A DNA stretch of 64,000 bases from contig OZ287696.1 in the NCBI GenBank assembly GCA_965649825.1, forward strand, positions 911,101 through 975,100, given 5' to 3'. Position numbers and translations under genes: made by a program. Within the stretch, counting starts at the first letter, position 1, and each line of letters starts with the position of its first letter. Origin of the DNA: Penicillus capitatus (Eukaryota > Plantae > Chlorophyta). Of the stretch, positions 8,261-56,554 are shown one piece after another. The notes below the pieces were generated by a model that made no database searches, was not told the origin of the DNA, and was given only the letters and a program-made list of their open reading frames with translations.

Positions 8261-11200
8261 TCATGCGATGTCTACCTGTGATGAAGAATGCAACCGTTTT
8301 CGCATTTGGAGAAGGCAGAGATGGATTTGATCACGTACAGCTTGGTTGAAGCCATCTTGGCTGTCGTCTATCTGGGGTTGAGCATGGGAAGATTCTGATG
8401 TCTTCACCAAGAAATGATCATTTAGATCTTCCGGCGGATCGCCCACGAAGAAGGCTTCGATTCTTTGCGGCGTGAGGAACTCGTGCAGGCAAGATTGAAC
8501 GAGACGATGGACACAGGAGACGCTTGTGTCAGCCGAAGAGGGCGAAATCTGCGCAACGGCGTCCTGTTGTGGAGTATGTATGTATGGAGAGGCAGCGACA
8601 TCGATCGCGGAGATGGTGGATTCCAATGCCTGCGACGCATGTTTCGGTGTTTGTTTCTCCGGAATGCGATGATGAGATTCGAGATCGTAATCGAATTCTT
8701 CATCGGATGATTCGACAGCTTCTCTGTCCACCTCATCGTGCTCTGATTAAAAGAAAAGTCGATGGTGAGAGTTCGGCATGGCGATCCGATGCACCTTCGA
8801 CAGGCCGATGATGAGGGAGGGTGGCGAGATCTGTCGACAGATTGTCCGTGCTGCTGTCACAAGGCATCGGGTTTTCGATTTCGACACTTGTCGGTTTTTC
8901 AGTTGCCGCAAATTCGATATCCGCGATGCATTCCGATCGGATTTCGATCTCGCTTTCCGAAGCCACCGAAGATGCAGAGCTCGAGCTGTCATCCTTGGTG
9001 CTTTCATCGGATATCTTGATCAAATCTCGCTCCGAAGAGCCAGAGCTTAGAGGATCTTCTATGCCCTTCGTTATCGTGCGATCGCTAGATCTTTTTGAAT
9101 CAGATGACGGTTGTCGATCCAACAGTAATAATGACTGGTCGACCAGAGGAGGACACGTGAAGTCGTCCAACAGCCTCGCATCTTGATCTTCGGTATCAGA
9201 TGTTGACTCTCTTGTCGAACAGAAAGGAGAGAGGTCAGAAGTGTGAATGCTCTCGCAGCAAGCGTAACTATGCTCTTCGTTCTTTTGATCGAGGACGACA
9301 GCATCCATTGCAGATTGCGGCCTCTCCAGATGCTCATTCTGTACTGTATCTTTGCCATCGATTTTTGTTCCCTCTTCTTCGCATGACGTTTCTGAAATGG
9401 TTGTCCGTTCACTGTCCGAAGAAGTTGTCGATACCGGCTCGGTATGACGCACCGAAGACAGAGATGCATCTTCTAGCTTTGTCTCCACGTTTTCTTGCGG
9501 GTCCACCGAAGTGCCCGTCGATCCGTCGATATTATCGAGATCCACTGTCGAAGTCGTCGCCGATGCGTTGCTCGACGAGTGAGATAGAAGATCTGCCATC
9601 TCCATGATCACACTGCCGCAATCGGATGTTCCAGATGAGGAGAGGCCAACTTCAACATCCGTTGAAGACTGCACGATCTCATCTTCTGCAGGTGCACCTT
9701 TGTCCTCGATCTTCAGATCCGACGCCACTTTCTTGTCGTGGTCATCGATCACGGGAAGGGAATCTTTGGAACGTGCGTCTTCGATGGATCCCACCGAAAC
9801 GGCGACAGAATCAACAGGCAACGGATTCTTGTTGTCGAATTCGTGGTGATCCGACGGCTGACATGCATCTGTCCTGTTCAGACGATCGTCTGCGTTGTGG
9901 GAATTCATGGAGGCACTTGGATCGGCATACTGTCTGGCGATTTCGAACACCTGTCGGTTTTTCTCCGAAGGTAATTGTGTAGGATAACTGCATTTTGAGA
10001 CAGAAGGATGAAGGATGACAGAGTTGCCATCTAAAGCGCTGCTCGTCTTATCATCATCTTCTGTCTTTGGATGCTCTGTCATCTTCCTCCTCCTTTGTCT
10101 TGCATCGCTTCTGACTTCAGAGGTCGTTTCTCTTGGACACCGTTTTTCCTTACCGTCATCACAATAACGCGGTCGACGCCGCCTTGGCTCGTGCGGTTTT
10201 TGATCTGCGTTGCGTGAAGGCAGACGATTCTTGTGAAGGAACGCATTCAGGAATTGCTCTGTAAGACAAAACAAATGTCTGGTCAGACATCCACGACTAG
10301 GGAACAATACTTTTGGCAGCAGCAAGCCTTCGAAGATGATCGAGCTCGATGGCGCAGAGTCCTTTGCTGATGGTGAGTTTTCTCAAATCTCTCTTCCGAT
10401 CGAGGATGAGAGATCTGAGATCGATGTTGGTATCTTCAGCAAGAGCGATTTGACATCCGTCTTGCGGAGTTCCTTTCTCGACCGGTCCAGATTCTGAGGC
10501 CTTACACACGGCGACATTGCCTTCGCGTTTCTCTTCTGTCGACGCTTTGTCTTCGCGTCGTCTGGGAACGCGCTGCGAATGGCATTCCGGACAATGACGG
10601 TTCGGAGTGGCGGCAGTGCTCAAAGCAGGTTTCATGGATGGGTATGGCATCGATCGCGTCTCTTCAACGAATTCTGCCGATGAGAAGGGTAAAGCGGATG
10701 TGATAACGTTAGGAGGAAGGGTACGATAGAATACGGGATTGTGGAACTGTTGCATCGGAGCAGCACAAGGCGGTTGATAGTGTGTGTTACGTGGAGTCGT
10801 GTTTGAAGGGGGTTTCATCAGAACACTGGTCAGTTTGGACACCTGCAATACGCCTTGTCATCAGAGGGACATGACAAAACGGGCCGAACTTCACATGTCA
10901 GTTGCCGGAGGTCCTTCTGAACACGGCCCAGGTCGTGCTGAATACCGATCAGGCACTCGCCTCGATCTCGATCTCGATTACGATCCGAAACACGTACGCA
11001 CGAACTTCGATGTATCGGGCCTTGTAATGGTGAACCACGTTGAGCGTGTGCAAGAGGGACACGGGCTGGAGACTCGGGTTTGATGATTCCGTCGATCGCG
11101 ACGTTCGTCTGCGGTGTTTTCTGGCGCATGGAGTAAGAAGCTGAAAGAGCAGATGTGTTGGGATGCCTCTGTTTCTTCCTCCCCTTTCTTCGATCGTCTT

Positions 11201-20214: not shown

Positions 20215-20516
20215 TCATAAACATTGCGATGCAGATTCTGAGACGTGTCGATGAATACTAATCTGCCCTTGTACAACAAATACGCACCACTTTTGAGAGG
20301 ATGATGAAATGGAAGCGATACCTCCTCGCACTGAACACGACTCATTTGCGTCATCAATTGAACGACGTTTGTCAGAGAATGGTTTCGAGAGTCTTCTGCC
20401 ACTGAGATCGATAGACGTAGAACATTCGGTGTTCCTTGTGGGGGGTCCAGAATCGGCCACGATTGAACAGCGTCGTTCAGAAAAGAGAGTGAGTGATCGT
20501 CTCCCGAAGGAATGGA
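20215..20516 (-). pseudogene. Decayed 3' fragment of the NIPA/ZC3HC1-like gene (intact copy at 30667-31854)
   Basis: ORF 20211-20552 SIPSGDDHSLSFLNDAVQSWPILDP matches SVPSTDDRSLSFLNDPVRSGPILNP; nucleotide match to 30520-30810 with frameshift. Confidence 0.85.
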
Positions 20517-20639
20517 AGTCGCCTTTCTATTCTTTCTGTCAAGACCATCCATACATCTTACCTACATAACCGAATTGTCTTTGTGAAGTGTCGAGATGTC
20601 CGACGATCAGTCTTGGTTAAAAACGAGGGTCATTGGGTG

Positions 20640-21910
20640 TTTGGGTTCAGAAAATGGATGGCTTTGAATCTTTGTATGACGATATCGATCGCGGACCGTT
20701 GGCCGTTCGACATTCAGCTTTAGGCAGCTTCGTGAGATCTGCGTCTATCGAACAACAGCTGCTTTCGAAAAGATCCACTGTCTGTCCGTCAATGTTGCCG
20801 ACCATCCCTTCGGCTAGCGTCTTGCCTAAGAAGACAGAGTGGTGATCTCCACATGACTCGGGTAGCGAGCAGTGGCGAACGAATGACACACAACGAGTGC
20901 CTCTCGTCGGCGGTGTAGTCACGGCCGGCAACACATGTCGATGCGTCAAAAAGAGCATAAGCCGGTTGGTTTCTCCGCAGACGGCCAAGTTCTCGTAGAA
21001 AGGCAGAGACTGCACAGAAAACCTTCGTCGCACACGACTACTTCTTGCGGGGCATCCTCACGATGGCTGTAGCTCCGAGTGTCGCAACGTCGACTGCGGA
21101 CGACAACAGACTCCATTCGGCCTCTTTCAGAATCACCACGCACATCCTTTCGATCGAAGAAAGACATCTGGCCGCTCTAGCTGCATGCAGCCTTTGCTTG
21201 ATCGCCATCGTTCGTGCCGTCTGGCATCCGGCTTATATTCGATATACTTCTCTTGTAGCATTACAGCGAGATCCGGATCTCCAAAGCACTGTTTCCCGAA
21301 CTCAGCCTCTTTCACTTACTGTTCTGGGTAAAAGCAAGTCACCGCCGGCTTCGCAGTCAGAAGAGTCTGCTCAGCCAGTGCAGACCGAGCGAATTTCATT
21401 GGCCGTCGCCAGCCTCAGCATCAAACACTCGACGCCGTGCGCGAACCGAACTAAAACCACGGGTCCACGGCCGTCTGGTTGTCGCAGATCAGCCGGCCGT
21501 TCGGTTCTGCCTTCCATGTCCGGAGGAGTTAGGTCAACCGACAACTCCAGAACCGATTCGCGTTACACCGTCGCAAGCGCTCTCGCGACGGCGTTCGCTG
21601 CAGAAACGTCCGAGACAGACGGCCGCCATCACGAAGAGTCCTTGCTGCTTCTTCGACAGAAAACCCCTGCATCTTCTCTCTGCTCAGGCGACGTCGAGCC
21701 GACTCGAGCGGTTCGCCGTTCGCAGATTCGCGCTGAAACGGTCGCGGAAACGCATGCGCGTTACATCTACTGTTACACCTAGAGGAGAACATCCGGACAT
21801 ACTGTAGACAATCTCACCTGTAAAAAACTCTGCACAGCTTACGAGAACGCTCTCCCGCTCGCATCTCGCGTCCCGACGACAGAATTCTGCGTTTCCGGCC
21901 CTTGGGCAGC
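20640..21910 (-). pseudogene. Possible decayed gene divergent from the Pro-rich gene (also at about 53630-54900)
   Basis: Minus-strand splice-like sites (TC|GTAAGC...CTAG, CA|GTAAGT) and protein-like stretches (EFGKQCFGDPDLAVMLQEKYIEYKPDARRHERW; SVQSLPFYENLAVCGETNRLMLFL) interrupted by stops; 1-bp indels between the copies; no family recognised. Confidence 0.3.
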
Positions 21911-22002
21911 CATCTCTTCGGCCGTCGGCGCATGCAGCCGCCGCCAAACGACCACAGTTAGCAGCCGCCAACCACATGCCGCGAACGACAACCGAGGCGG
22001 CC

Positions 22003-22008
22003 TATAAA
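22003..22008 (+). promoter_or_regulatory. TATA box of the Pro-rich cassette gene (copy 2 at 54995-55000)
   Basis: CCTATAAAGG about 100 nt upstream of ATG 22105, followed by a pyrimidine-rich leader. Confidence 0.5.
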
Positions 22009-22104
22009 GGTCCTGTCGAAGCGCCTTCCGCACTCGAGTTTCCGAGTTCTGTTTCTGCTTCCGGCGACCTTTGCTACTTTCTTCGACGACCGACTTCCAC
22101 GAAG

Positions 22105-23291
22105 ATGTCTGATACCAGAATGAACACCGAGGCCGATTACGGCTACCCAGACAAGCCGTAAGTCTTTTACCCACGCTTCGACGCGTCGCGCGCCTCAGAC
22201 CTCCTCGACTGCGGCGCTGGACGATCACCGTGCACATGGATGCGTCCAGCGCCACAATCCGAACGCATGCGGTCGCGTGCCTCCGAGAACGCGCAGCTGT
22301 CCTGTTCTTCGACAGGTCTCTAACCTGCGTCTGTGTTTAGGTTTTCGCAGGTCACGCTCCGGGAGGTCTTAAGCGACAGACCTCCCCGGGCGTTCGAGGG
22401 AATGGATGAGGCCGAGCGAAGGCAGTTGTATTGGGAATTAAAAGCCCAATCAACTGCCTTCAGGGGACAACAACTGCTCGAAGAGCAGGCCCCTCCTGTG
22501 CGGTTCGGTCCCAATAGGGACCAGACCGCACAGGCTCGGCCCGGACGGCGGGCGAGGGTCCTCTCTGCCGATGAGAGGAGAGCGCGGTTGGCCCAACAGG
22601 GCCAGCCTGCTGCTCCGCCGCCTCAGGCGCGCCCCGCATCGCCGCCTCCTGCAGCCTCCCAGCCACAGACATCATCGCCGCCGCCGCCGCCGCCAGCCGA
22701 GGCGTCACCAGCAGCCTCTCATCCGACAGCCCTGCCAGCGGCACCCCAGACGAGCGCGCCGCCGACCATGGAGTGGTCACCTGCGCAGCCAGCCACTCCT
22801 CATGTCCAACCTGCTGCGCCGCCTCCGGCATCATCACAGACGCCCAGTTCAGCCGCCATGGAGTGGTCCGCCTGTCCTTCCCCGCAGCCAACCCAGACGA
22901 TGTCCAATCCAACCACCCAGCCATTCAAGCCGCCGCTCTTCCCCCCTCGCCCGCAGGTGTTTTGCATACCTGCATCCCCTCCTCCTATCATCCCCTCACG
23001 TCTTTTTAAGTTTTCCTTCCCCTTTTTTCCCCCTCCCTTTCCTGCACGCACCTCCCAATACTCCCTACCTTCTCAACCTCCAATCCCCCCTCGTCCTTTC
23101 ATCCTTTCTGTCCGATATCCTGGCATCCCTCCCAGACCATACTTCTTATCTGGCGAGTGTGTGAGCTTGGGTCCTGCGATTCCTCAGCGCCTTTTCTTCC
23201 TATCAGGCGAATGTGTAAGTCACTTTTTTGTTTCCTTCTCTCTTTTGATGTGCTTTCTGTGTAGGTTTATGTTGAAGGTTGGTCTGCCTGA
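22105..23291 (+). CDS. Orphan Pro-rich protein, copy 1 (about 340-356 aa, 4 exons)
   Basis: Introns 22158-22198, 22316-22340 (or 22272-22350) and 23215-23264 give one frame ending ...FFLSGEC|VYVEGWSA*; synonymous-biased divergence from copy 2. Confidence 0.8.
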
Positions 23292-23740
23292 GGGCATCTT
23301 TCTCCACATTTTTGAACGCTGTTTTCTCTCTTTGCTGAAAAATTTTAAAAAAACAAAAAGATTCATGGGCTGTTTTCTTTTCTTCCTGTTTCTGCCAATC
23401 CACCTTCGCTTTGTTGTGGATGGCTGTGTTTGCTGTTTTTACGTGTTGGCTGTCAACAGCTCATCAGCTGTTTTGTACATGGAGCGTGTCGTTTCTTGAT
23501 CTGCTGTTTTGCTCGGCTGGAGGATGGAGACTGGGGTGTGCCACGTACTCTCTGTTTTTTACCTGGGATGGCTGCTAGCGTCGTTCTACTTGTCATTTTT
23601 GCTGATTTGGAGGCCGCCATGTCTATTTACCTGCTGTCTGGAGCTGCCACGTCCGATTTGGCGTTTTGATGCATAGAAACTGGAGTGTCCGACTCACTGT
23701 ATTGCTGCCTGGAGGATCCCATCTGCTGTCTTGCTGCTTG

Positions 23741-24010
23741 AAGCTGCCGTACCTCACCTGCTGCTGTGCTACTGGAGGCTGCCGTTTCTCACATGCCGCC
23801 TGACTGACCAGAGGCTGCCACACCTCACCTGCTGCTGTGCTACCAGAGGCTGCCATACCTCACCTGCTGCTGTGCTACTGGAGACTGCCGTTTCTCACAT
23901 GCCGCCTGACTGACTGGAGGCTGCCATACCTCACCTGCTGCTGTGCTACTGGAAGATGCTGTACCTCACCTGCTGCCTGACTGCCCGGAGGCTGCCTTGT
24001 CTTACCTGCT
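23741..24010 (+). repeat. Degenerate 35-36 bp minisatellite, about 8 units
   Basis: Unit like GCTGCCATACCTCACCTGCTGCTGTGCTACTGGAG. Confidence 0.85.
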
Positions 24011-24654
24011 TTCCGCTGCCCAAAAGATGCCATCTATTGATGTTCCCGTGCGGAGCTGCCGTGTCCGATCTGCTTATCTTACCGCCTGGAGACTGGAGTG
24101 TCCTAACATGCCGACTGCTCATCGAACGCTGCCGAGTCTCTCTACCCGATTCCTTGCCGACTGGAGGCTGCAGTTCTTTCTTTCTACCGTCTGCTGCCTG
24201 GAGACTTCCTGGTCTGTCTACCTGCTGCGTGGTGTGGATGGAGGCCGCAGTCGACCTCGTTCTACCTGCGACATCGCTGCCCAGAGGCCACAGTCGTTCT
24301 GCATGCAGTCTCGCTTCTTATGTGGGCCCAGTCGCCATACATGCCGCATTGCTTTAAAAGTCTGTGGTCGTTCTTACTGCTGCCGTACTGACAAGAAGAT
24401 GAGGAGTCTGTCTACCTGCCGCTTTACCATGGATGCAAGGCGACAGTCGCCTTCACTGTTGCCTTGGAGTCAGTGGATTCCGCAGTCACTCTACCTGCGA
24501 CCGCGATGCCCGGAGGCCACAGTCGTTCTGCATGCTGCCTTGATGTGAATGGAGGCCGCAGTCCTTCTACCCGCTGACCAGTTGCCCAGAGACCGTCGCC
24601 ACCCTACCTGTCGCCGTGCTGACTGTAAGATGTTGAGTCAGTCCACCTGCTGCC

Positions 24655-26382
24655 TTAACGATCATTGGAGGCGGCTCTCATCCTACCTGCTGCCTCCCTC
24701 GATGTGGATGCGAGGCGGCGGATGACTGCTGCTTCGACGAGAACTGGGGTCGCAGTTGACCTACCTGCCGCCTCAACGACAACTGGAGGCGGCAGGCGTT
24801 CTACTTGCTGCTCGCTGTGGATGCGAGGCGGCAGTCGACCTACCCTGCCTCCGCGAAGACAACTGGAGGCCGCAGTCGTCATACCTGCCGCAGAAGCCCT
24901 GCTTGCTGCCTCGCTGTGGATGCGAGGCAGCGGATGACTGCTGCCTCGACGAGAACTGGGGTCGCAGTTGACCTACCTGCCGCCTCAACGAGAACTGGAG
25001 GCGGCAGGCGTTCTACTTGCTGCCTCGCTGTGGATGCGAGGCAGCGGATGACTGCTGCCTCGACGAGAACTGGGGTCGCAGTTGACCTACCTGCCGCCTC
25101 AACGAGAACTGGAGGCGGCAGGCGTTCTACTTGCTGCCTCGCTGTGGATGCGAGGCGGCAGTCGACCTACCCTGCCTCCGCGAAGACAACTGGAGGCCGC
25201 AGTCGTCATACCTGCCGCAGAAGCCCTGCTTGCTGCCTCGCTGTGGATGCGAGGCAGCGGATGACTGCTGCCTCGACGAGAACTGGGGTCGCAGTTGACC
25301 TACCTGCCGCCTCAACGAGAACTGGAGGCGGCAGGCGTTCTACTTGCTGCCTCGCTGTGGATGCGAGGCAGCGGATGACTGCTGCCTCGACGAGAACTGG
25401 GGTCGCATTTGACCTACCTGCCGCCTCAACGAGAACTGGAGGCGGCAGGCGTTCTACTTGCTGCCTCGCTGTGGATGCGAGGCAGCGGATGACTGCTGCC
25501 TCGACGAGAACTGGGGTCGCAGTTGACCTACCTGCCGCCTCAACGAGAACTGGAGGCGGCAGGCGTTCTACTTGCTGCCTCGCTGTGGATGCGAGGCAGC
25601 GGATGACTGCTGCCTCGACGAGAACTGGGGTCGCAGTTGACCTACCTGCCGCCTCAACGAGAACTGGAGGCGGCAGGCGTTCTACTTGCTGCCTCGCTGT
25701 GGATGCGAGGCAGCGGATGACTGCTGCCTCGACGAGAACTGGGGTCGCATTTGACCTACCTGCCGCCTCAACGAGAACTGGAGGCGGCAGGCGTTCTACT
25801 TGCTGCCTCGCTGTGGATGCGAGGCAGCGGATGACTGCTGCCTCGACGAGAACTGGGGTCGCAGTTGACCTACCTGCCGCCTCAACGAGAACTGGAGGCG
25901 GCAGGCGTTCTACTTGCTGCCTCGCTGTGGATGCGAGGCGGCAGTCGACCTACCCTGCCTCCGCGAAGACAACTGGAGGCCGCAGTCGTCATACCTGCCG
26001 CAGAAGCCCTGCTTGCTGCCTCGCTGTGGATGCGAGGCGGCGGATGACTGCTGCCTCGACGAGAACTGGGGTCGCAGTTGACCTACCTGCCGCCTCAACG
26101 AGAACTGGAGGCGGCAGGCGTTCTACTTGCTGCCTCGCTGTGGATGCGAGGCGGCAGTCGACCTACCCTGCCTCCGCGAAGACAACTGGAGGCCGCAGGC
26201 TCCCTACTTGCCGCAGTCGTTGTACCTGCAGCCTCGCTGTGGATGCGAGGCGGCAGTCGACCTACCCTGCCTCCGCGAAGACAACTGGATGCGGCTGTCG
26301 CACTACCTGCGACCTCGATGCCCGGATGCCGCAGTCCACCTACCTGTTGCCTTGCCGAGTTGTGAGGCGGCTATCGCCGACC
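24655..26382 (+). repeat. Tandem stem-loop array, copy 1 (114-bp and 99-bp higher-order units built from 35-40 bp hairpin modules)
   Basis: About ten 114-bp units and 4-5 99-bp units; stems CTGCCGCCTC/GAGGCGGCAG and GCTGCCTCGC/GCGAGGCAGC. Confidence 0.95.
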
Positions 26383-26619
26383 GTAAGTCCTTCTTTCGCA
26401 AGCAGACGGTCTCTCACTCTTTAATTGCATACAGACTTTGTGGCGTAGTGGGCATCTGTTCTTCCCTGCATCACAACTCAAAACTTTTCACCTGTCGGCA
26501 CACTATTTGAAAGAGTGACATTTTACAAGCTTCTTTGATATATACCGTTGTAACGCTTTCAACAGTACAACACACTTGTCTAACACTATTTCCTACTGAA
26601 CCACACTTTTAAAAAGGAG

Positions 26620-27880
26620 TGACATTTACAAGAATTGTCTAAGCAGTCGATTCCTGTTTTCGTTACATAGCGTGTTATATGATTCGACGACAGAACGCCA
26701 AGTCATCAACTCCTCCCTGACTGTTGTCGAGGCTATCGCAAGACGCCCTTCGTCGTTAACTCGTCGCCGTCTGCATGGCCAAGTCGTCTGAAATCCACAG
26801 ATCTCTTCGGTGCACTCGCCTCCGCCGACAGATAGAATGGACGCCGACTCCGACAAGGCGCCGTCGACTAAGGTGCCTAAATTCATCAAGCACGGCGCGG
26901 CGTACGACCGTGGATAACTGCTCAGTTCTTCGTATATCGAACAGTTGCCTATTGGCACTGCTAACGCCACAATGCCGTGCTTCTCTTCGAAAGGCTTGCA
27001 CTCAAGCGTCGGGTGTTCAAGTAGTGCACGAGATGTCGGAAGCGTGGCGGCGGATGAGAATAGACTTATGGCGGTTGTGTCAACGAAGTGTCGACGGGAG
27101 AGTGGAAAACGAGAACCCTGTCGATGTGCCGGACACTTGAGCAGTTAGCTTGCCCTTTCAGCTTGCAAGTCGATTCGCAACGCCGCAGACCATGTGTCGT
27201 TTGGTACTGGCTACGGCACGCCCCCCCCCCCCCGAGGCAAAATAAAAAGTCGCTGCTTGTCATCGACGGCAGATGACCGCCTCGAGGACATGTGCGGGAG
27301 ACGAACGATCCTCTCTTCGAACTTTCTACATAATGCGTCGCCTAAAACTCGGCGTTGACTCTTCCCGCCGTTCGAGGAGTGCACGCATCAGAATCCGTGC
27401 CGCTTTTCAGGGTAAAGAAGCGCGTGCATACATTGGCATCACGTACGCGCCGTTTTCGTTCTATCGCCTTGGTAACTTTGCAGTTCAAGCAAAGAGAAAC
27501 AGACGAGGAACATGGAAGACCCCGACGGAAGACGAACAAATGTAAGAACAATGCGAACTCTAAAGTGGCCGTAGTCGCAGAGGCGGTCGAGAGCAATGCC
27601 TCCAGGAATGCTTGCTTGTTTGATAGCTTAGATGACGTGAACTCGCTGCTGTTGTGCCATTCGATGCATCGATCCGCTTTTTTACTGCTCGCACTTTAGG
27701 CGTATCTCTTCGATCTAGATGAACTGCCTCGCGACGACCCGCGTTACTCATGTTCGACGGACCCCTCTAACGAGTCCTGCACAATTGATCGCCATTCAGC
27801 CGTTCTAACAACGATATCGAGGTCGACGCCTCTCTGCGTCTCGTTTGTTAGATTTCGGTAGATCGTCAGAATGACATTTG
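26620..27880 (-). pseudogene. Diverged shared segment, possibly a decayed minus-strand gene (partner about 60245-61510)
   Basis: Alignable peptides LSTVVRRAVLDEFRH versus CPSTVLRQDVLAEFRN; minus-strand TGTAA at its 3' end in both copies; frames broken in both. Confidence 0.3.
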
Positions 27881-27892
27881 CACTCGCGTTAA

Positions 27893-29067
27893 ATGGAGAC
27901 GCCTGTCCGTACGCCAATGTCGCCGCCATGGGAAGAAGATCTCGACAGAGAGCGCGTCTACAAAGCGACTTCTGCTCTTTGTCAGCACGTCCAAGAACAG
28001 AAAGAAAAATCACAAAACATCCTTGAAGACGATGCAGAGTGGATCTTCCTCGTAATCCTGAAAATATCACCTCTCGGGCTGAATGTGTCTGTATCAGTTT
28101 GTGCGCTATAAGTCGATTCCGGCCATCTTCCGAAAGTTCCCCGTTCAACTGTACTCTCCTCGAACTGCCACTAGAATGACATCTTATCTTCTACTTGTTC
28201 CTCAGGAAACTGTTCAAGTCCTTCTGGAATACGGAGGATTTTCGAATCTGCCTTATTATGCACGACAAGAATGCAGGTGCGTTTAACGCAGATGAATGCA
28301 ATAGTAAAGACGGTGGATAAAAGGAAGGAGAGTCAAGACGGCACGCGAACTCCTCATACCAGATCGTGTGACAGAAGTGCTGAGCGTTCAGGACATCCGA
28401 AGGCAATACGGCGATGACTCCTCGAAGAGAGAGCTGTGCAAATCGTATGATCTGTTTCTGCTGGAGAGATCTATACGAGATATCTCTAACGAGCTCCTCG
28501 GTGCCAATCTCCTGGCAGATCGACGTTCGCTGACGAAACGCTGCAGGTGGTCGTTTCGTGGAGATGAAGAAGGTTCCCGTGCTCGTTCATCTGACCCGTC
28601 ACCCCGAAGTGTGGATCAAATCGATCGAAGCCGAGAAAAGCAGGACACAGATGTTCTGTCACGTGCATCAGGAGAGGAGCATCAGGTACCTCTGCCCCCG
28701 TGATCATCTTTATGACGCGTTATAGTTTGACAGGGTTGGCAGGAGTTCGTTCACCGCGGAAGAGCTGACAGAGAATATATTCTCCGTCGTGCAGCAGATC
28801 GTTGAGCATCCGGAATTGGAGAACTGGCAGGACATCATGCAGCTTTACGTCTGTACAGGCAGAAGCGTCCGTTTGCCTGTCTATCAAACATTTCCCGATC
28901 CGCCGCAGATCGAAGAGGGGAAAGAGGAGGACAGATCGTCGCGATGGGGAAGAAAACGACACGCAAAGAGCCGACGATCACATCAGCTGACGAATCGTCT
29001 GATGGGAGCATTCGCAGCAACATATCCGCCTGAACCTTTGCCTGTCTCAAAGAACCCTGACAGCTAG
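27893..29067 (+). CDS. RSL1D1: Ribosomal L1 domain-containing protein (RSL1D1/Cic1/Utp30-like)
   Basis: RERVYKATSALCQH...EWIFL, KRELCKSYDLFLLERSI, QIVEH..LENWQDIMQLYVCTGRSVRLPVYQ; TGTAA at 29093. Confidence 0.8.
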
Positions 29068-29512
29068 CTTAGATGCTGATTGAGTGCGTTTGTGTAACTC
29101 CAGTAGTCGTATTGGAGAGAGCTCTAGATTCATGATCGACTCCTCGCTGAACTCGAGAACGCGATATGAAGACTTCCAAGAATCGCTGCACAAGAGGTTG
29201 CCAGTTTCGACTCCGAAAGCAGAGGTCAATGAGGAAGACCCTCGGCATCAGCAATTTCATGACTTCATTATTGACTGCACTAGATCCGTGTCGACAAACC
29301 ACGTTGCCTCTCGTTTGCTTATCCCCCGAGCACACTTCGGAGACAGTCAGAACATTCACTTGAAACGTCTGAACTGGTGACGACTCTTTGGCGGCGTCGA
29401 AGGATGCACGGACACTCTTGCCTCACGCCTGACAACTTCGACGAGAGTATTCATCTTGTGACACGTGTCATTAAACGAAGGCAGTGTTTATTCGGTGTCC
29501 AAGTGTCAAAGG

Positions 29513-29872
29513 ATGTATGACTTTTGTTTTACGTATCCCTATGCGGTGCTTCTGGCGCTGGGAGGATTAATTGGCTACGCGACCAAAGGCAGCACCGGCT
29601 CACTCGGAGGCGGTGTCGGCTCAGGCGTCGTACTTTATCTCCTCGCGCATATCAGTCTGCGCTACTACCATGCCGGGAAGCTGTGGAAGACCGGAACATT
29701 CCTTTCCCTGGTGGTCTCGGTTGCGCTGACCGTGGTCATGGCTTTGCGCTACCAGGAAAGCGGGAAGCTGTTTCCTGCTGGGGTGTTCACAGTTCTCTGT
29801 GGATCGATGTCGCTGTTCTATGTCTGGTCCCTTTTCCTGGGACCTCAGCCAAAGAAGAAGACGAATAAATAG
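29513..29872 (+). CDS. TMEM14/FAX (fatty acid export 5/6-like) small membrane protein
   Basis: MYDFCFTYPYAVLLALGGLIGYATKGSTGSLGGGVGSG...RYQESGKLFPAGV; TGTAA at 29909. Confidence 0.9.
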   Translation: MYDFCFTYPYAVLLALGGLIGYATKGSTGSLGGGVGSGVVLYLLAHISLRYYHAGKLWKTGTFLSLVVSVALTVVMALRYQESGKLFPAGVFTVLCGSMSLFYVWSLFLGPQPKKKTNK

Positions 29873-38405: not shown

Positions 38406-38889
38406 TTCGTCACGTGCATAAACGGTGCGGGTATCCGAGTTGGGTTGTCCGTTCATGACTTGTGTACGATGCATAGTTTGTATGAAACGGTCGTGATACA
38501 GGCGGTAGGGCGGATGGTGGAAGTGACGCCTGTTAGTTTCGCTGTTTTCAAGATTCAGCTGTGTCCAATAATGCCAGCAACAATTTTGTTGCCCGTGCTG
38601 ATCTTCTTGAACTTGTGTGCAATAACAACACTTGTTCCCACAGCGCCAAGTCGTCATCACTCTCGACGTCGCGTCACCCGATTGCCTTTCTGCTGATCGT
38701 GTCCAATGCTTCCTCCCCCATTGCCGTCCCATCCATCCCGCGTATACTGCCGATCCATGATGGGACGAGCGTGTTCATCCTGTTCTTCGTGACTTCATCA
38801 CACCGTGTATTTGTTTGTCGACCTGACGATACCACCGTGTATTTATTTGTCGACTTTACGATCGCAACGCGTATTTGTCCACCTTTACG

Positions 38890-40081
38890 ATGCTGCGTCG
38901 TTGTGCTCAGGACCTTGTGAAAACCTCGTTTCCACTCCGCTGCGCCGCTGTGGGATGGGAGACACGACTGAAGTCGACGGTGGGATGGGAGACACGACTG
39001 AAGTCGACGGTGCGTCGCTTTGCCATTCTCTCCGTGTCGTGGTAACGGCAACGACCTTTGCTCGATAGGTATCTCACGAAAAAGAGACATTCGAACTCGA
39101 ATGGGACGAAGCGAAGCACGATTTCGAGAGGAAAGGGAAAGATACGAGCGGCACGACGCCGCTTTCGCATCCGTCTTCTCAGAAACGCGAAAAGGGCGAT
39201 ACGACTTATTTGCTCATGCAGCCTGTGTATGAAAGGGCCTATACAGAATCGATCAAGCCACGCCATCAACCTCCAACCACGGTATGGCTTCGCATTGGCT
39301 TCCTTCTGTGATGTGGGACGGATGACAGGCGACAGACAGAGCCGCCTTCTATTCGATTCAATTCATGCGTCGTATGTTTGACCTTGTCACAGGCTATGGT
39401 CCAGATATGGACATGAAGAAGTGGCTGCGCCGCATTGTTTTCTTGGAGACAGTGGCAGGAGTACCGGGAATGGTGGGCGGGATGCTGCGACATCTCCGAT
39501 CGTTGCGTTCGATGAAGCGCGATCACGGTTGGATTCACACCCTCTTAGAAGAGGCAGAGAACGAACGCATGCATCTGCTGACATTCCTGCAGTTGCGTCA
39601 ACCGGGTATCCTGTTCAGAAGCTCAGTCATCATGACACAAGTCCGATATCGCTGCCGGATGGGCTGGCGTTCTAAGCATGGATGCTGTTCTGTCCAGGGC
39701 ATCTTTTTTAATCTCTATTTCGTATCCTACATGATTTCTCCACGCTATGCACACAAAATGGTGGGCTACTTGGAAGAGGAAGCTGTGAAGACCTACACAC
39801 ATCTGTTGCACGACATTGACAGCAATAGACTCCCTGAATGGAAGCACACGCCGTGTCCAGAAATTGCCAGAAACTATTGGAAGCTGCCAGTAGAGCACAC
39901 CTGTAACCATACATGTCCGTCCCATGGGTCGTCTGTGCTGCAGGAGGGTGCGACGATGCGTGATTTGATTTTGAACGTTCGTGCAGATGAAGCGTGTCAC
40001 AGTCATGTCAATCATACGTTTGGTAACATGCCAAAGGACGAGACCAATCCATTTGATAAGTACAGTCACACTGTTCCGTGA
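38890..40081 (+). CDS. AOX: Mitochondrial alternative oxidase
   Basis: RRIVFLETVAGVPGMVGGMLRHLRSLR, LLEEAENERMHLLTF, VGYLEEEAVKTYT, VRADEACHSHVNH; presequence MLRRCAQDLVKTSF; TGTAA at 40126. Confidence 0.97.
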
Positions 40082-40133: not shown

Positions 40134-43100
40134 TCAGTACCATGGATGCCACGTTGGATCCATGGTGCATAAATTCTCTGGATCTGTTGCTTTGCGAATG
40201 AGTTCTTCGACGCCTCTGTTAATGGCCCCGCGCGGCGCTCCCTCTTCCATGTAGTTCTTCGGGACATCTGGACAGATCTCTTTGACGTTCTGCATCGCCC
40301 CGGCGACATTCTTTTCGACAAGTGGCTGTAGCTGAGACATACTCGATGTGTACTGGCTTCTGGATTCTCTCCTGGAGGCCCATGCCAATAGCTCGTCTCT
40401 GAAGAAGAGACTCAGACACGAGGCGAGATTCGAATGGCGCTGCGTCAGTGCCATAGCCGCCGACACCATCGACGTCGTAAAAACGCCCTCGACACCGAAT
40501 GGACTGAAAAATGTCGCCAGGTTTCGTGTCAAGCGAAAAGGAACGGCCTCTTCGTTCTGGTGCACATATCCCTGGGCATTGACCAAGGGACAGAAATCCA
40601 CTTGCAGTACTTTGCCAGAAGAACGGGAGAACAGGATCTTTCCTGGCACCCGGCCGCCAATCGACAGCATCACAGACATCAGAGACGACAGCGCCATCTG
40701 TGCACAGAACTGCTTACGGAAGACCCAGAGATGATTCGAAGACGGCAAGATTCTGTACATATAAAGCGAAAAAATATTCTCGGCTATCTTTTCATCGGGC
40801 CCCTCGGTGATCTCTTTGAACGCTTGGAGGGCGAGTTCAGCTGGATCATCGTTTCTGTTGTAAATTTTTCCTTTGAAAAGCAGCACAGGATAGTCGGGTT
40901 CCTTGCCAAGAGACTGACAGTTGACTTCCAGCGCCTCCAAGTAAGTGGTAAAACAGGGATCCTCTTCGACGAGACGGACTTTGTTCCAGACAGGAACGAT
41001 GACAGGTGCAAAGAAGCTCAGAAATCTGCTGCGGCATTGATGGTGCTTATTCAGGAGACGGTTCAGTAGACACATCAACTGCAGCATACGTTCCTCTGAG
41101 GATGCCGGTTGGCCAGAGGTATGTCCGTTCTGCAGGATGAAGTGCGTCTTGCGTCCTTCCGAATCGTAGAAGGCGATTCTGCGAAATGCTGTCCCCTGTC
41201 GACGAATCGTCCGAATCTCTGAGCTGATCTTCTCCAGATAGACTGGAACATCGGCAATGGTATCTGGCGACTTGGTATACTGACAGGGCATCTCGATGCC
41301 GTGCAAATTGAGCTCCTGCAGTGCAGGGCTCTCTCTGTGCAGCTGCAGAACGGTCGGCATCTGTTCGTCCAGATACTGGCTCAGCATATTGCGCCATTTC
41401 TTCAATCGCTGTGTCAGTTCTCCCAGCGTTTTTGGAAAGCCGTCTGCCATGGGACTGAGATGATGAACGAACGCCTCCTTTAGATCTTTATGCACGGCAG
41501 TGCTGGCACGGGTGTCTGGGAAACAGGCACGGCATACGCCATCGATCTCGCGAATGAGATTACTCGGAACCTCCATCGTCTGCGGCCCCGGTACTTTGCA
41601 GCAACGCGCCAACAACACATGAACGACCGCCATCAATCGCTCCTCGGGTTTTGCCATAAAATTGCTGGCAATTTCGCGGAGCATAATCTCGAGTGTGTTG
41701 GACAAGGGACCCAGCTGGTGCTTGAGTCTGTCCATCCATTCCTTCACGTGTTCAAAGTTCTGACGGATGGTCGAGCGGGCGCCCAGTAGAGCTGCATCCT
41801 CTCGGCCAGTACCCGAAGAACTGCCTGCTTGTGGATTGCCTGCCTGCGTCATGTCGGATGGAGTGGCAGAACTGGTTGCCACATCTGTCCGCTTGATTTT
41901 CTCCAAAGCCACATTGGCCGCTTCTCTCATGTTCAACATGTGCACTCTCAGAAAATAGTAGAGCGCTTGGGGATGTGTCTGGATGATTCTGGGAAGAATG
42001 CCTTTCAGAGATTCGCCTTCTGGACGATGCAGCACTGAGAGAATCTGCGGAATGTAGAAGAGCCAGTAGGCAGATGGAATGACCTCGGCACCACTCAACG
42101 TCTCTCTAAAGACTTTATCCACCGTTCCTGTTAAGCCACCGATCACTCAGGCACGCAGACACAAAGAGAACGGACCTGTCTTGTCAAAGGACAGCAGATG
42201 AAGGCATCTAGGAATCATGGCACGGGCGGCAGATGATGGTAACTGCATCGCCTGGAAATAACAGCCAACGGCATATTCCAGCTGAACAGAGGCATTGGGG
42301 TCTTGCTTCTTCTTCTCATACATTTCATCACAGAAGGCTCCCCAACTGAGCCACGCCTCAGGGAACTGATGATTGAGGGTGATGGACGTGCTGAAGGATT
42401 GATTGGCCATCTCTGGATCGCCCAATGCTCTGTAGTACTCTCCCTGCAGTCGGAAGATCTGAGCCTGGAGTCCTTGATAGGGAAAGTAGTCCAGATTGGT
42501 CGAGCAAAGCATCGTCAGTCCCGTGAGTTTTTGGTCGTCCATCAGTAGATAGGCTTTGGACTGCTCCACGATCTTGAGAAAAGCTTCTTGCACGTCCATG
42601 TAGCTATCGCTGTACATGTTGTTCTCGATATCGATGCAGACGTCTAAGGCTCCGTGCTTTCGGGCGACATTTGCTAGTCGATTGATGCTCGATGCCTTGT
42701 CCTTGATGCACAGGTGATGGAGCGAAGGCGAATTGGGCTCGGATCCACCGCTGATCGAATTGGCAATGCTGCTGTATATGATGTGACGCCAGATGAAGAC
42801 ATCTGACCACACAGAAAGCGGCTCCCAGACATTAGGACTACGGAGACGCCACGTTTCCAGAATCTCCTTCATGAAACCCGACTGCTCATAACGACCGCCT
42901 CTCGGCCCGAGCTCCATGAGTGCCCTAAAAACCAAAGGCCTCAGTAGAGAGCATCTCAGAGATGTCCACCCACTTGGCGCTCTCGCACACCTCCACGACC
43001 TGTTGAAATCTCTGCAGCAGATGCACTTGTCCAAGAACGCCGATCTCTGGCAGTTGCCACCATCGTTGGAGGCACTGGTCGATGGCCTGGCTGATGTGTG

Positions 43101-46100
43101 TGTTGCAGAGATTGGCGTTGTTATCCTGAAAGGCACTGTAGATCATGAGCATCGAGTATTGGAGCTTGTCTGGAAACTGCTCCTTTGCTCCCTGGAGGAG
43201 TTGTCTGAGTTCGCTCCAATCAGGATCGGGTAATCTCCACGAGGCATCCGCCAACAAGGCAACGCTTCTCGAAGCTTCTGCCCAACTGTGCAGCTCATCC
43301 CATTGATTCAGCTCCTTGGCACATCGGCACCATTCCTCAGACCAGAGCATGACTTCCCGCGAGACGCCTTCGGATCTTCCTTCTGTGGAGTGCACGGCTG
43401 CCTCGCCAAAGACGTGCAGTGCCTCTTCCCAGTATCCATACTGCATCAGATTGATACCGTCATGCGTGTAGCCGCCAAGAAACCGTTTCTTCCACAAACC
43501 AAACATCATGTCCGTCTCCGAAAGCAGACTGTACAGTTCGACCAAGGTATCGAAGCATCGCGATTCTTCGGGAAAGATAACGACGTGCGATTCCAGCAGA
43601 GGAATGGCAATGTGCCAGGCATTGTACGTCTTGCCCAAGTACTTGATGAGCTCGGGCGGAATCTTGGGCTGTGGATAGCATAGAGAGGTCGCTTCCATCA
43701 GTCCCTGAATGACATTCGGTCGATGCGATGCTTGGACAGCGTGATAGCGCTTCGTCAGGATAGAGATGATGGGCTTCGCCAGCGAGACTTTACTGTTCTT
43801 GTCCAGTGTCGCCCAGACGATGGGAAAGATCAGGACCCATAGATGATAGGCCAGGTAAGAATGCACATGTGCAAACTCTTTGAGTGGTCCCATCAGATCA
43901 TCAGCCAAGAATGAACCTATGTGACACACAGCTGCTTGGCAGAGAGGAAGGCAGGGGGACAATGGCAGACTTCTTTCTCGAATGAACTGCATGTGGTCAG
44001 AGAGAAGTCGATCCAGAGGACTCATGGGCTCGTTTTCCATTTCCGTATCATCAGAGCCCATAGGCGGACCATGATGCATGACATCAGCCGTGCATGTCGG
44101 GAAGGGAGCCAGCTGCGCTGAGTTGGGAAAGAAGGTCACGGGTTCTCTTCCCCTTAGAGAGGCCAGGAGATAATCCAGCGCTTGTTTCAGCCAGAAACGG
44201 CTGGAGACATGTTCCCAGTCCTGTGTCTGCAGGATGAATTTCAGGCGTTCGAACAGAGAGCTTCCAAACGATCCTTGGTACAAGGTGAAGAACTGTTTGC
44301 GCAATTCTGGCGTCGTGGTGCGGATGCCGCAGAGGAACGTCTGCTCGACATGTGCAAAGACATCTCTCCTGAAATCCTATGCGTGCACGTACACACCCTC
44401 AGCCACCAATCATCAAAGCCATACCACGTACTGCATTCAGTCCAGGGGACGCGCACACGTCGTAGATGGTACTGAGAAAGAGGGAATCGAAATGCTTCTT
44501 CATACATGGCTCCACCAATCCATTGGCATCCAATCTGCAAATCTGCTGCATGGACCAGAGGAGATGTCGTCGCGTGATGGCACGCGATTCTCCGTTTTGG
44601 ATCCACTCCTTCAGCCAATTGGACACGATGACCAAGACATGATAGAAGACAGATCTGTCAGGAACGCGACCGCCTTTCCATGTGAGAAACTGAATCATGG
44701 AAACGACAAAGCATTCGCGTTCGCTGCTGCCAATCTCGTGCAGACGCCCACCACAGAGATGCAGAATCTTGCAGACGTTGTGCATCTGTGTTCCAAAGCT
44801 GGGCAAAGGAATCGTATCTGTGTCACCAGACAACGGAGGCGGTGCCGAATGGGTTGGCGTAGAAACAGGGTTTTGCAGAATGATGACGTACTCTCGAGAG
44901 TATCTCTCCAAGAGACGCACCAACGAAGAGAGAAAGCGCCCGACCATGCCAATCCTGTTGTTCTTGTCTGCCTCCAGGATTCTGAGACATGCCGAGATTT
45001 CGTGTTCGACCTGTCCCTGCTGGATGACGTGACTGTTGACGTCCAGATACTTCACGAGCAATTGCGTATCGAGGGTCTCTCTCAGGAGGGGGTTCACATC
45101 TTCGATCGCAAAGACCTTCTTGAGCGCTGAGCAAAGTCTGTCCAGGAGATCTTCGTCGTGCATGATGATGATCTTCTGTGACAGCACAATGAAATAATGC
45201 CAGCCATGTTCCAGGAAGACAATGGGCTGGTATTGCAGGGCGAGGGAGACCAAATCCAGTCCTGCTGTCAGGATCAACGCCGGCGATTGGTGCTGCATCT
45301 GACTGCCTTCGATCAGTCGCTCCACGAAATCCAATCGGAATTCGACATCTGGCCATACGTCTAGTGCCTGGCTCAAGATGCGCATGATGTCGCCGTACGA
45401 GTATTTCACGGTGTTGTCTTTGGAGTGGTCTGACGGCACCGCAAACGCTGTCTTGGCCAAGAACGCAACCACCATTTTCTTCATATTTGTGAACGTCTCT
45501 CCTGCCAACGGAGGTGGAGAGACGGATCCCATCATAGCATCGTCGCCGCATCCCTTGATTCTTTGGACCTCCCAGTCAACAATCACTCTTTCCATGTCAA
45601 TGGCCATCTGTCGATTCTCTGAATTGGCATTGATCGGAGGGCGGCGCAGACGGCTGAGTGTATTGACCATCTGGCCTAGAAAATGCGAACGGTAGGCGTA
45701 GAAGAGATCTGGATGTCCGATGATCATTTGCCAGAGATTCATCAGCAGATTGAGCTTGTGTCCTTCGGCCTGCATGTGCTTGATGGCATACTCCATCCAA
45801 ATAGGAATGCTCCCTGGCTCCGTCTGTCCAACGAATCGCTCTGCCAGTGCAGGAACCATCACATCGAGTGTTTCCTGCACGAGCTCCCTCTTCGTCTCGG
45901 CAAAATCCGATTTCAGAAGATTCACAAAGACTTGCAGGACGGTCTTGTTGCTGAGCTGAAGTGTTCTCAGGATGTGGGCGACCAAGAGAAATGCATGGCT
46001 CTTGCATTCGACGTTCTCAGCTTTGAGGAATGACCACGCATACTTAAGGACCCCTTTGCCAAATCCATCCGCGCAGATACCGGGTGCCCCCACCGTGAGC

Positions 46101-53391: not shown

Positions 53392-55096
53392 GAGATGGCA
53401 TAACAGCTACCCTGTACCTTCTCAGCGGCAATTCAATTATTTCTTATCGCATTCTTGTTGTTGTTATAAAGAGTGAATGGCACCTCGTTGTCTTGGATGA
53501 ATAATGGAAGTCGCCTTTCTATTCTTTCTGTCAAGACCATCCATACATCCCACCTGCATAACCAAAGTGCCTTTGTGAAGTGTCGAGATGTCCGACGATC
53601 AGTCTTGGTTTAAAAACGAGGGTCATTGGGTGTTTGGGTTCAGAAAATGGATGGCTTTGAGTCTTTGTATGACGATATCGATCGCGGACCGTTGGCCGTT
53701 CGACATTCAGCTTTAGGCAGCTTCGTGAGATCTGCGTCTCTCGAACAACAGCTGCTTTCGAAAAGAACCACTGTCTGTCCGTCAATGATGCCGACCATCC
53801 CTTCGGCTAGCGTCTTGCCTAAGAAGACAGAGTGGTGATCTCCACATGACTCGGGTAGCGAGCAGTGGCGAACGAATGACACACAACGAGTGCCTCTCGT
53901 CGGCGGTGTAGTCACGGCAGGCAGCACATGTCGATGCGTCAGAAAGAGCATAAGCGGGTTGGTTTATCCGCAGACGGCCAAGTTCTCGTAGAAAGGAAGA
54001 GACTGCACAGAAAACCTTCGTCGCACACGACTACTTCTTGCGGGGCATCCTCACGATGGCTGTAGCTCCGAGTGTCGCAACGTCGACTGCGGACGACAAC
54101 AGACTCCATTCGGCCTCTTTCAGAATCACCACGCACATCCTTTCGATCGGAGAAAGACATCTGGCCGCTCTAGCTGCATGCAGCCTTTGCTTGATCGCCA
54201 TCGTTCGTGCCGTCTGGCATCCGGCTTATATTCGATTACTTCTCTTGTAGCATTACAGCGAGATCCGGATCTCCAAAGCACTGTTTCCCGAACTCAGTCT
54301 CTTTCACTTACTGTTCTGGGTAAAAGCAAGTCGCCGCAGGCTTCGCAGACAGAAGAGTCTGCTCAGCCAGTGCAGACCGAGCGAATTTCATTGCCCGTCG
54401 CCATCCTCAGCATCAAACACTCGACGCCGTGCGCGAACCGAACTAAAACCACGGGTTCACGGCCGTCTGGTTGTCGCAGATCAGCCGGCCGTTCGGTTCT
54501 GCCTTCCATGTCCGGAGGAGTTAGGTCAACCGACAACTCCAGAACCGATTCGCGTTACACCGTCGCAAGCGCTCTCGCGACGGCGTTCGCTGCAGAAACG
54601 TCCGAGACAGACGGCCGCCATCACGAAGAGTCCTTGCTGCTTCTTCGACAGAAAACCCCTGCCTCTTCTCTCTGCTCAGGCGACGTCGAGCCGACTCGAG
54701 CGGTTCGCCGTTCGCAGATTCGCGCTGAAACGGTCGCGGAAACGCATGCGCGTTACATCTACTGTTACACCTAGAGGAGAACATCCGGACATACTGTAGA
54801 CAATCTCACCTGTAAAAAACTCTGCACAGCTTACGAGAACGCTCTCCCGCTCGCATCTCGCGTCCCGACGACAGAATTCTGCGTTTCCGGCCCTTGGGCA
54901 GCCATCTCTTCGGCCGTCGGCGCATGCAGCCGCCGCCAAACGACCACAGTTAGCAGCCGCCAACCACATGCCGCGAACGACAACCGAGGCGGCCTATAAA
55001 GGTCCTGTCGAAGCGCCTTCCGCACTCGAGTTTCCGAGTTCTGTTTCTGCTTCCGGCGACCTTTGCTACTTTCTTCGACGACCGACTTCCACGAAG

Positions 55097-56275: not shown

Positions 56276-56554
56276 GTCTGAGGGCCTTTCTCTCTTTTTG
56301 ATGCTGTTTTTATTGTGGGATAAAAATAAAAAAACAAAAAGATCTAGGGGCTGTTTTCCTTTCTTGCTGTTTTGCCATTCCACCTTCGCTTTGTTGTGGA
56401 TGGCTGTGTTTGCTGTTTTCATATGGGCCGTCATAATCTCATAAGTTTTTTGAAACATGGAGGGTGTTGTTTACTGATCTGCTGTTTTGGTCGCCCTGGG
56501 CTGGAGTATCTGATCTGCCGCGTCTGATTTGGCGTTTCAATGACTAGAGATCGC

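Follow-up and report, generated by a model that had tools for sequence, protein, structure and literature searches.

This analysis concerns an array of short GC-rich hairpin modules at positions 24655-26382 of a 64,000-nucleotide (nt) stretch of Penicillus capitatus contig OZ287696.1 (positions 911,101 to 975,100 of the forward strand), referred to here as the window. The array lies 3' of a gene for a proline-rich protein, and a second copy of gene and array is found further along the window. In every copy of the gene family examined from the window's sample, the array forms the 3'-flanking spacer of the gene, and it turns over by tandem amplification into higher-order units that are specific to the locus. 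We read the array as a lineage-specific, expanded, non-coding GC-rich hairpin minisatellite that is kept in the 3' flank of each family gene by repeat turnover, and we give this reading a probability of about one half. An earlier, sequence-only reading of the window had proposed selection on RNA or single-stranded DNA structure. The features on which the argument depends are as follows.

22341 to 23214, plus strand: copy 1 of the proline-rich family gene, main coding exon (best-conserved tblastx frame; 3' splice site just upstream)
23215 to 23264, plus strand: intron of 50 nt, GTAAGT...TGTGTAG (splice motifs kept in 6 aligned paralogues)
23265 to 23291, plus strand: terminal mini-exon, VYVEGWSA and stop codon (stop column shared in 5 of 6 paralogues)
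23346 to 23362, plus strand: A-rich tract TAAAAAAACAAAAAGAT, candidate poly(A) signal region
23394 to 23432, plus strand: GT-rich element GCCA(A/T)TCCACCTTCGCTTTGTTGTGGATGGCTGTGTTTG, highly conserved
23500 to 24654, plus strand: proximal zone of copy 1, older degenerate 35-40-nt modules (from Tandem Repeats Finder, TRF; 35-nt repeats at 23723-23976)
24655 to 26382, plus strand: main hairpin array of copy 1 (about 45 modules of 34-41 nt; higher-order units of 114 and 213 nt)
55333 to 56206, plus strand: copy 2 of the family gene, main coding exon (identity to copy 1: 96.5% over 2.1 kb)
56374 to 56412, plus strand: GT-rich element of copy 2
56500 to 57039, plus strand: proximal degenerate modules of copy 2 (36-nt and 28-nt repeats)
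57040 to 60110, plus strand: main hairpin array of copy 2 (about 80 modules; higher-order periods of 77, 116-121, 231 and 270 nt)

The modules are 34-42 nt long, and the two arms of each are complementary and form a hairpin of 9-11 bp. Three types have been distinguished: type 1, TGCTGCCTCGC-TGTGGAT-GCGAGGCAGC, is 34-35 nt long, type 2, CTGCTGCCTC-GACGAGAACTG-GGGGTCGCAG, is 40 nt long and imperfect, and type 3, TGCCGCCTC-AACGAGAACTG-GAGGCGGCAG, is also 40 nt long. The linkers between them end in CTACC or CTACT. Inspection of the sequence agrees with the earlier description of hairpin modules and CTACC/CTACT linkers at 24655-26382, and the counts given then, about 45 modules in copy 1 (1728 nt at ~38 nt each) and about 70 in copy 2 (57473-60108), hold. 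T-A, C-G and T-G all genuinely occur at one stem position, as had been stated. The extent of the array has to be revised in part, since the tract at 24655-26382 stands but the periodic sequence begins earlier, at ~23500, and takes in the 35-nt repeats of the proximal zone, which carries the oriented motifs TGCTGC and TGGAGGC of the main array. Likewise, the loops do recur, but they are not freely swappable cassettes; they belong to two classes, (C/T)GTGGAT and (A/G)A(C/A)GA(C/G)AACTG, each with point variants.

The arrangement of the modules is that of a minisatellite. In copy 1, TRF resolves a 114-nt unit (6.2 copies with 99% identity at 25229-25939 and 2.2 copies with 100% identity at 24902-25156) and a 327-nt super-unit (114+213) that spans 24697-26251, with which the direct-repeat families concur. 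Near-identical units occupy the centres of the arrays and degenerate modules their edges. Across loci, the module periods are 35-42 nt and the higher-order periods 77-327 nt, always head to tail in tandem, and each locus has a higher-order unit of its own (114/213, 77, 84 or 231 nt, or 147 nt repeated 14.8 times at 99% identity). Copy 2 and the paralogues L004, L003a and L008b have flanks that are 79-83% identical and arrays that differ in length (2.3-4.2 kb) and in higher-order unit, which is the fast change of copy number and unit among paralogues that characterises minisatellites and other variable number tandem repeats (VNTRs).

The gene in front of the array has a well-defined 3' end. In the frame of the open reading frame (ORF) at 22333-23499, amino acid identity among paralogues is 78-83% up to 23214, compared with 57-65% in the other frames (tblastx). 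A 3' splice site, ctctaac...tgtgtttag, lies directly upstream of the main exon of copy 1, and protein conservation halts precisely at the GTAAGT 5' splice site at 23215. The intron ends in TGTGCAG in one of the 6 aligned paralogues and in TGTGTAG in the others. The stop codon lies eight codons past the intron, and its position is kept in 5 of the 6 paralogues, including a change from TGA to TAA in L003b; copy 2 of the window stops two codons earlier than the other aligned paralogues. The protein has a variable proline-rich middle between two conserved blocks (10 family members), belongs to a narrow family of 23 representative clusters among 1.84 billion proteins, and has no match in Pfam or PDB.

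Two elements separate the stop codon from the array. All 12 aligned gene copies have the A-rich tract, and in several of them it includes AATAAA or ATTAAA variants. The GT-rich element is 39-45 nt long, and its core, CGCTTTGYTGTGGWTGGCT, is identical in 13 gene copies, drawn from two samples, and differs by one mismatch in L010. It is conserved better than the coding sequence, both across paralogues with ~53% protein identity and in the second sample, and could serve in regulation or as a poly(A) downstream element. Its sequence includes GTGGATG, which is also the loop motif of the most frequent hairpin. The module tract begins ~200 nt past the stop codon and ~70 nt past the GT-rich element, which separates gene and array in at least 13 copies. 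In 11 of 11 copies with 3' sequence from the window's sample, the array is located 3' of the gene in the same orientation (the two window copies, w1 and w2, L002, L003 twice, L004, L006 twice, L007, L008 and L009), and the link between the arrays and a "cassette" gene that had been suggested earlier holds. The window's sample is the long-read metagenome assembly ERZ25074695, from which the loci L002-L009 come too, except for L005, which together with L010 and L011 comes from a second sample, ERZ26696514. Outside the window, the GT-rich element has been located at the following positions.

L002: 8024-8042
L003: 7932-7950 and 19818-19836
L004: 1565-1583
L005: 11540-11558
L006: 3473-3491 and 11253-11271
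L007: 9725-9743
L008: 754-772 and 10977-10995
L009: 5566-5584
L011: 9495-9513

A conserved element distal to the array was sought as a sign of a poly(A) site after the array, and none was found. Scans of Joint Genome Institute (JGI) metagenomes with the module and with the conserved element returned no relatives. As a separate observation, the A-rich tract that links the stop codon to the GT-rich element contains 2-3 copies of a small hairpin, AATGTCACACT-N4-6-AAGTGTGAC, in the gene copies of the second sample and in a single divergent paralogue. The window has comparable GAGTGACATTT(T)ACAAG motifs past the array, at ~26515-26531 and ~26618-26633. The hairpin lies at these positions.

L005: 11330-11460
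L010: 9310-9440
L011: 9295-9425
L006: ~11176-11200

The arrays contain two families of modules. Family 1, found with the close paralogues, has the arms CTGCCGCCTC/GAGGCGGCAG and a very common 27-nt hairpin, GCCGCCTCGC-CGTGGAT-GCGAGGCGGC, of which there are 231 instances (189 distinct) in ten arrays. This hairpin is often followed by a small one, GTCGCA-CTACC-TGCGAC, in which the linker is the loop. Family 2, found at L006 and L009 (~53% protein identity), has 42-nt modules with a different stem, CTGGCGGCC-AGTGGA-GGCCGTCAG; 50 of the 56 distinct copies carry a G-T wobble. The small hairpin of this family is GATGTC-CTCCC-GACGTC.

The hairpin potential of the arrays is real and far above chance, as the sequence-only reading had supposed. 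A 342-nt sample folds at -182.7 kcal/mol on the plus strand compared with -140.2 +/- 5.5 for dinucleotide shuffles (z = -7.8), and its reverse strand folds almost as well (z = -8.7). Local folding of the whole copy 1 array gives z = -15 on either strand, the copy 2 array gives z = -12 and -10 on the two strands, and across the main arrays z lies between -5 and -16 when the shuffles are strand-matched. In copy 1 there are ~0.9 hairpins of 6 bp or more per 40 nt, and in all main arrays ~0.8-1.1. The only match of the array region in Rfam 15 is CcsR1 at chance level (20.6 bits against a threshold of 65.3 bits), and the window as a whole has no match at the gathering thresholds.

The same element also exists without hairpins. 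The proximal zone at 23500-24654 folds at -21.2 kcal per 100 nt compared with -23.4 for shuffles (z ~0). In a related organism (L005, L010 and L011), the same gene, A-rich tract and GT-rich element are followed by a module tract of 0.3-0.65 kb, with 35-45-nt modules of the form TTTTGCTGC...GGAGGCTGTCGTGG, a GC content of 49-50% and z ~0. Since these tracts share the oriented motifs of the main arrays and yet do not fold better than chance, the hairpins are a derived and not an ancestral state of an older module tract, and they arose with a 5-10-fold expansion and a rise in GC.

The asymmetry of the mismatches within the modules is a pattern of mutation and no evidence for RNA pairing. G-T mismatches outnumber A-C mismatches 168:37 in the 27-nt hairpin, 94:10 in family 2 and 125:53 in a symmetric inverted-repeat scan. 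The sequence-only reading had noticed such an excess and took it for G.U pairing in RNA; the excess is confirmed, but the interpretation is not. The ratio of C>T to G>A changes in these modules is 2.75 in stems and still 2.4 at unpaired sites, and because unpaired sites have a matching bias the G-T excess is attributed to strand-biased mutation. The G-U excess has been rejected as proof of RNA selection on the basis of this control. The arrays are also rich in TG and poor in CA. A comparison of stems and loops, which the sequence-only reading had named among its refuting conditions, speaks against structural selection, although those conditions taken together neither refute that reading outright nor clear it: divergence is 0.133 in loops and 0.091 in stems, so that loops are almost as conserved, and the array displays neither the stronger constraint on stems nor the tolerance of G-U beyond mutation bias that marks a selected structure.

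The two window copies are part of a segmental duplication, which bears on how the arrays recombine.

20511 to 29701, no strand assigned: segmental duplication, copy 1 (partner 53503-62371)
53503 to 62371, no strand assigned: segmental duplication, copy 2 (partner 20511-29701)

By blastn, identity between the two is 95% at 20511-23515 and 80-96% to ~24600, the arrays are not collinear, and identity past the array is 68-78%. By region, it is 96.5% over the gene and the upstream 1.2 kb, 83% over the proximal modules and 68% beyond the arrays. The downstream flank of copy 2 is closer to L003 (82.6%) and L008 (81.9%) than to copy 1 (68%), and the copy 2 gene is only 74% identical to the L003 gene. 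The gene region was thus homogenised after the flanks had diverged, which points to gene conversion there in recent times between the two window copies. The one conversion boundary seen, the end of the homogenised stretch, falls within the array.

Based on these observations, we propose that the ancestor of the array was a short run of ~40-nt GU-rich/GGAGGC modules, of the kind still present in the related organism, and that this run was perhaps part of a 3'-end-formation or termination zone by the likely poly(A) site. In the lineage of the window, the run would have grown 5-10-fold and turned GC-rich and palindromic. The complementarity of the arms would then be upheld mainly by repeat turnover, that is, by amplification of hairpin units, arm-to-arm template switching and frequent exchange, and selection on an RNA fold would not be needed to maintain it. 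Template switching creates and maintains hairpins as well as apparent compensatory changes (PMC8794818). The strand-biased C>T pattern suggests that the plus strand frequently becomes single-stranded; read-through transcription, in which it would be the non-template strand, is one way this could happen. The array itself may work in cis as a recombination-prone spacer, in favour of which the end of the 96.5% identical tract inside the array has been counted.

Several points weigh against this reading. The support for an origin in a termination zone, for the transcription of the array and for a role in recombination is indirect. Modules that do not form hairpins have been amplified as well, namely the 36-nt modules of L004 to ~21 copies, so hairpins are not required for amplification. 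Two unrelated stem sequences both yield hairpins with a 6-7-nt GTGGA-type loop and small linker hairpins, and one architecture from unrelated stems is an outcome that selection for structure would also give. The arrays of family 2 fold better on the plus strand (z = -5.5 to -8.6) than on the minus strand (z = -3.0 to -4.9). Finally, both-sided stem changes exceed those in column shuffles, with 26 compared with 12.2 (reached in 0 of 500 shuffles) and, in a second count, 41 compared with 17.4 (0 of 2000), among copies that are related by amplification.

The shared architecture, the strand preference of family 2 and the both-sided changes speak at the same time for the main rival, a selected RNA structure, which we regard as doubtful, though ahead of the other alternatives. 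The array would be transcribed with the gene, as a long 3' untranslated region (UTR) or as read-through RNA, and its 45-100 hairpins would serve as a multivalent platform for RNA-binding proteins, with proposed roles in localisation, granule assembly, stability or small-RNA production. The hairpin density of the main arrays, the fixed orientation of the array relative to the gene, the G-U wobble in most family 2 copies and the conserved GTGGA(T/G) loop, which reappears as GTGGATG in the GT-rich element, are in line with such a platform. On the other hand, the bias behind the G-U excess is seen at unpaired sites too, conservation of the loops comes close to that of the stems, and family 1 folds equally well on both strands. 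Hairpins are also missing where the modules are older and in the tract that is homologous to the array in the related organism, and neither a conserved element after the array nor an Rfam match supports the platform. Moreover, the A-rich and GU-rich block upstream of the array resembles a poly(A) site, in which case the array would fall outside the mature mRNA.

The covariation that had been offered as the sign of selection on structure carries a similar ambiguity. The hairpins and the excess of both-sided changes over shuffles are there, and 96.3% of the cells of the 27-nt hairpin are paired, but covariation is confined to 3 of 10 pairs and consists of transitions throughout (C-G, U-G, U-A), in counts uncorrected for shared descent. 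Together with the mutation bias and the conservation of the loops, this does not single out selection. A more specific form of the idea is less probable again, namely that the mRNAs or read-through RNAs of the family are hairpin scaffolds (45-100 GC-rich stem-loops with GUGGA-type loops) bound by a dedicated protein, possibly the family protein, which would drive localisation, condensates or co-translational assembly, the stems having co-evolved separately in the two sub-families.

The remaining alternatives are all less likely than a selected RNA scaffold. The first of them, which we consider improbable, places the function at the level of DNA: the modules, or their oriented GGAGGC/TACCTGC motifs, would bind a sequence-specific DNA-binding protein and act as a roadblock terminator or an insulator between closely spaced genes, in the manner of the repeated terminator and enhancer elements of ribosomal DNA (rDNA) spacers. 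Such sites would explain why TGCTGC and TGGAGGC recur at 36-42-nt spacing in 14 of 14 tracts, including the non-hairpin ones, and why GGAGR is found 318 times on the plus strand and 63 times on the minus strand. They would also fit the 27-nt element GCCGCCTCGC-N7-GCGAGGCGGC, which is conserved as a sequence together with its loop, and the position of the array, which follows the gene directly and separates tandem gene copies. However, there is no known candidate for the binding protein, any likeness of the linkers to Reb1/TTF-I-type sites is putative, 2-4 kb far exceeds what a terminator needs, and the conservation of the motifs could be plain descent from one ancestral module.

It is very improbable that gene and array together are a mobile element, that is, a transposable unit with a repetitive 3' region. 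The many copies, with 53-96% protein or DNA identity in several genomic contexts, and a protein without a known domain would suit such a unit, as would an ORF for the reverse transcriptase/RNase H of a long terminal repeat (LTR)-type retroelement at L002 1-881, ~5 kb upstream of a family gene copy. Against this, the duplicated segments take in neighbouring host sequence (Tmemb_14 and ~3 kb of flank), which identifies them as tandem or segmental duplications and not as insertions, the family gene has a conserved spliceosomal intron, and the unit itself comprises no transposase, reverse transcriptase or terminal repeats.

The weakest alternative, that the ORF of 539 amino acids (aa) at 24805-26424 or another frame encodes a repetitive protein, can hardly be credited, because no frame is open through any array tract, even though long ORFs cross some arrays (848 aa at L006 and 501 aa at L004) and the plus strand of the arrays has about half the stops expected from composition. 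Six-frame translation finds the 539-aa ORF in one frame only, the repeat tract of copy 1 (23520-26382) has 7-34 stops per frame, and all frames of all examined array tracts carry at least 7. Many higher-order periods (73, 77, 116-121 nt) are not multiples of 3, array-crossing ORFs at different loci are only 32-35% identical, and the upstream gene ends at its conserved stop codon, past which, as downstream of the array, no frame is preferred. Reading TGA as a sense codon, which would open a Cys-rich frame, CGCEAADDCCLDENWGRS*, is excluded by a Tra1 ORF of 1357 aa without an in-frame stop. Tiny introns on the minus strand (linker CAG|GTAGGT, CCTCCAG|) have also been rejected; they would measure ~21 nt compared with the 50-nt introns of the window, and the motif is missing in family 2. 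Gene callers have nevertheless made array "proteins" of 300-850 aa that are found in public protein collections (L006 11924-14470, window 24805-26424, and P0003-P0007); these are repeat-derived and not genes.

The window is eukaryotic, as judged by its genes for Tra1/TRRAP, NSUN2, NuBaID, AOX and Tmemb_14 and by introns of ~50 nt with GTAAGT...YAG ends; its GC content is 51%, and neither tRNA nor tmRNA genes were found in it. Further eukaryotic traits of the source are an intraflagellar transport (IFT) gene and LTR retroelements. The two genes between the duplicated cassettes that call for comment are listed here.

40134 to 51006, minus strand: Tra1/TRRAP gene, about six long ORFs parted by short introns
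39365 to 40081: AOX ORF

The ratio of observed to expected CpG is 0.79 in Tra1/TRRAP compared with 1.04 in the window outside the two duplicated cassettes, which might indicate gene-body methylation. Upstream of the AOX ORF there are two repeats unrelated to the hairpin modules, a 32-nt repeat at 38801-38878 (2.4 copies, 82% matches) and a perfect 30-nt tandem duplication at 38950-39012 (2.1 copies). Downstream of copy 1, Tmemb_14 (29465-29872) seems intact at 135 aa; its counterpart downstream of copy 2 (62150-62614) is diverged, has an extended frame and resembles a decaying pseudogene. The contigs of ERZ25074695 with a family gene have coverages of 36-45x, 16x and 7-9x and flanks that are 79-86% identical, which suggests that several related strains or species, or diverged haplotypes, coexist in this sample. 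The related organism dominates ERZ26696514 at 47-162x.

Among known systems, GC-rich minisatellites and VNTRs are the closest. The 40-bp VNTR in the 3' UTR of human SLC6A3 is an example. Like these, the array has 10-100-bp units that are arranged head to tail, GC-rich and strand-asymmetric, builds higher-order units, turns over fast between alleles or paralogues and lies in the 3' region of a gene. It differs in that each unit is an internal palindrome with a 9-11-bp hairpin, in its length of 2-4 kb, in accompanying every member of a gene family and in the replacement of the stem sequence between sub-families. Hairpins produced by template switching (PMC8794818; PMC5453318) are similar in their short inverted repeats, small loops and arms kept complementary through apparently compensatory changes, for which selection is not required. 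These two papers cover single hairpins in RNA genes and in the human genome and not tandem arrays (PMC8794818; PMC5453318), whereas dozens of tandem hairpin units are present here, for which template switching is a proposed mechanism. The A-repeat of Xist (PMC4672913) also has tandem, short, GC-rich hairpin-forming cores with pyrimidine-rich linkers, and would correspond to the array in function if the latter were an RNA scaffold. It has ~8 copies compared with 45-100 and no sequence relationship to the array.

Other likenesses are more superficial. Bacterial repetitive extragenic palindromes and the mosaic elements built from them (REP/BIME) are GC-rich imperfect palindromes of ~35-40 nt that cluster 3' of genes. 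They belong to bacterial chromosomes, alternate in orientation and are tied to RAYT transposases, whereas the array is in a eukaryote, has tens of units all in one orientation, as its GGAGR counts reflect, and turned up no RAYT context, although no search was aimed at RAYT. In Trypanosoma brucei, 70-bp repeats flank the cassettes of variant surface glycoprotein (VSG) genes; they are upstream of the gene, AT/TAA-rich and not hairpin modules. The array resembles them in being present with each member of a multigene family and in marking one end of a gene-conversion tract, and differs in its downstream position and GC-rich hairpins; with one conversion boundary seen, a role in directed conversion is not assigned to it. 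Clustered regularly interspaced short palindromic repeats (CRISPR) share the short palindromic repeats and the regular spacing, but they require a prokaryotic genome, cas genes and unique spacers. Here the genome is eukaryotic, no cas genes are present, the loops and linkers are found repeatedly within higher-order units, and Rfam has no matching family. The sequence-only reading was right to set CRISPR aside; bacterial REP elements, with which it had also drawn a comparison, are likewise not relevant in a eukaryotic window.

Minisatellites in 3' regions and template-switch hairpins are both already known, and a literature search for hairpin minisatellites in the 3' UTRs of gene families found nothing relevant. 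What is unusual is that every family member is accompanied by a 2-4-kb array of palindromic units, that the stems differ between sub-families, and that hairpin and non-hairpin states of one element can be compared directly. The short non-hairpin tract of the related organism, the degenerate edge modules and the palindromic modules of the two families form a comparative series of one 3'-flank element, in which the origin of hairpin repeats is open to direct test. Should turnover alone keep the hairpins, the array would be a natural case in which amplification, template switching and strand-biased mutation mimic the signals of functional RNA, namely conserved stems, a C-G/U-G/U-A series and a G-U excess, and would call for caution in genome scans. 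If instead the arrays function as platforms, of RNA or of DNA, that go with a lineage-specific gene family, each would be an unusually large cis element without a described counterpart.

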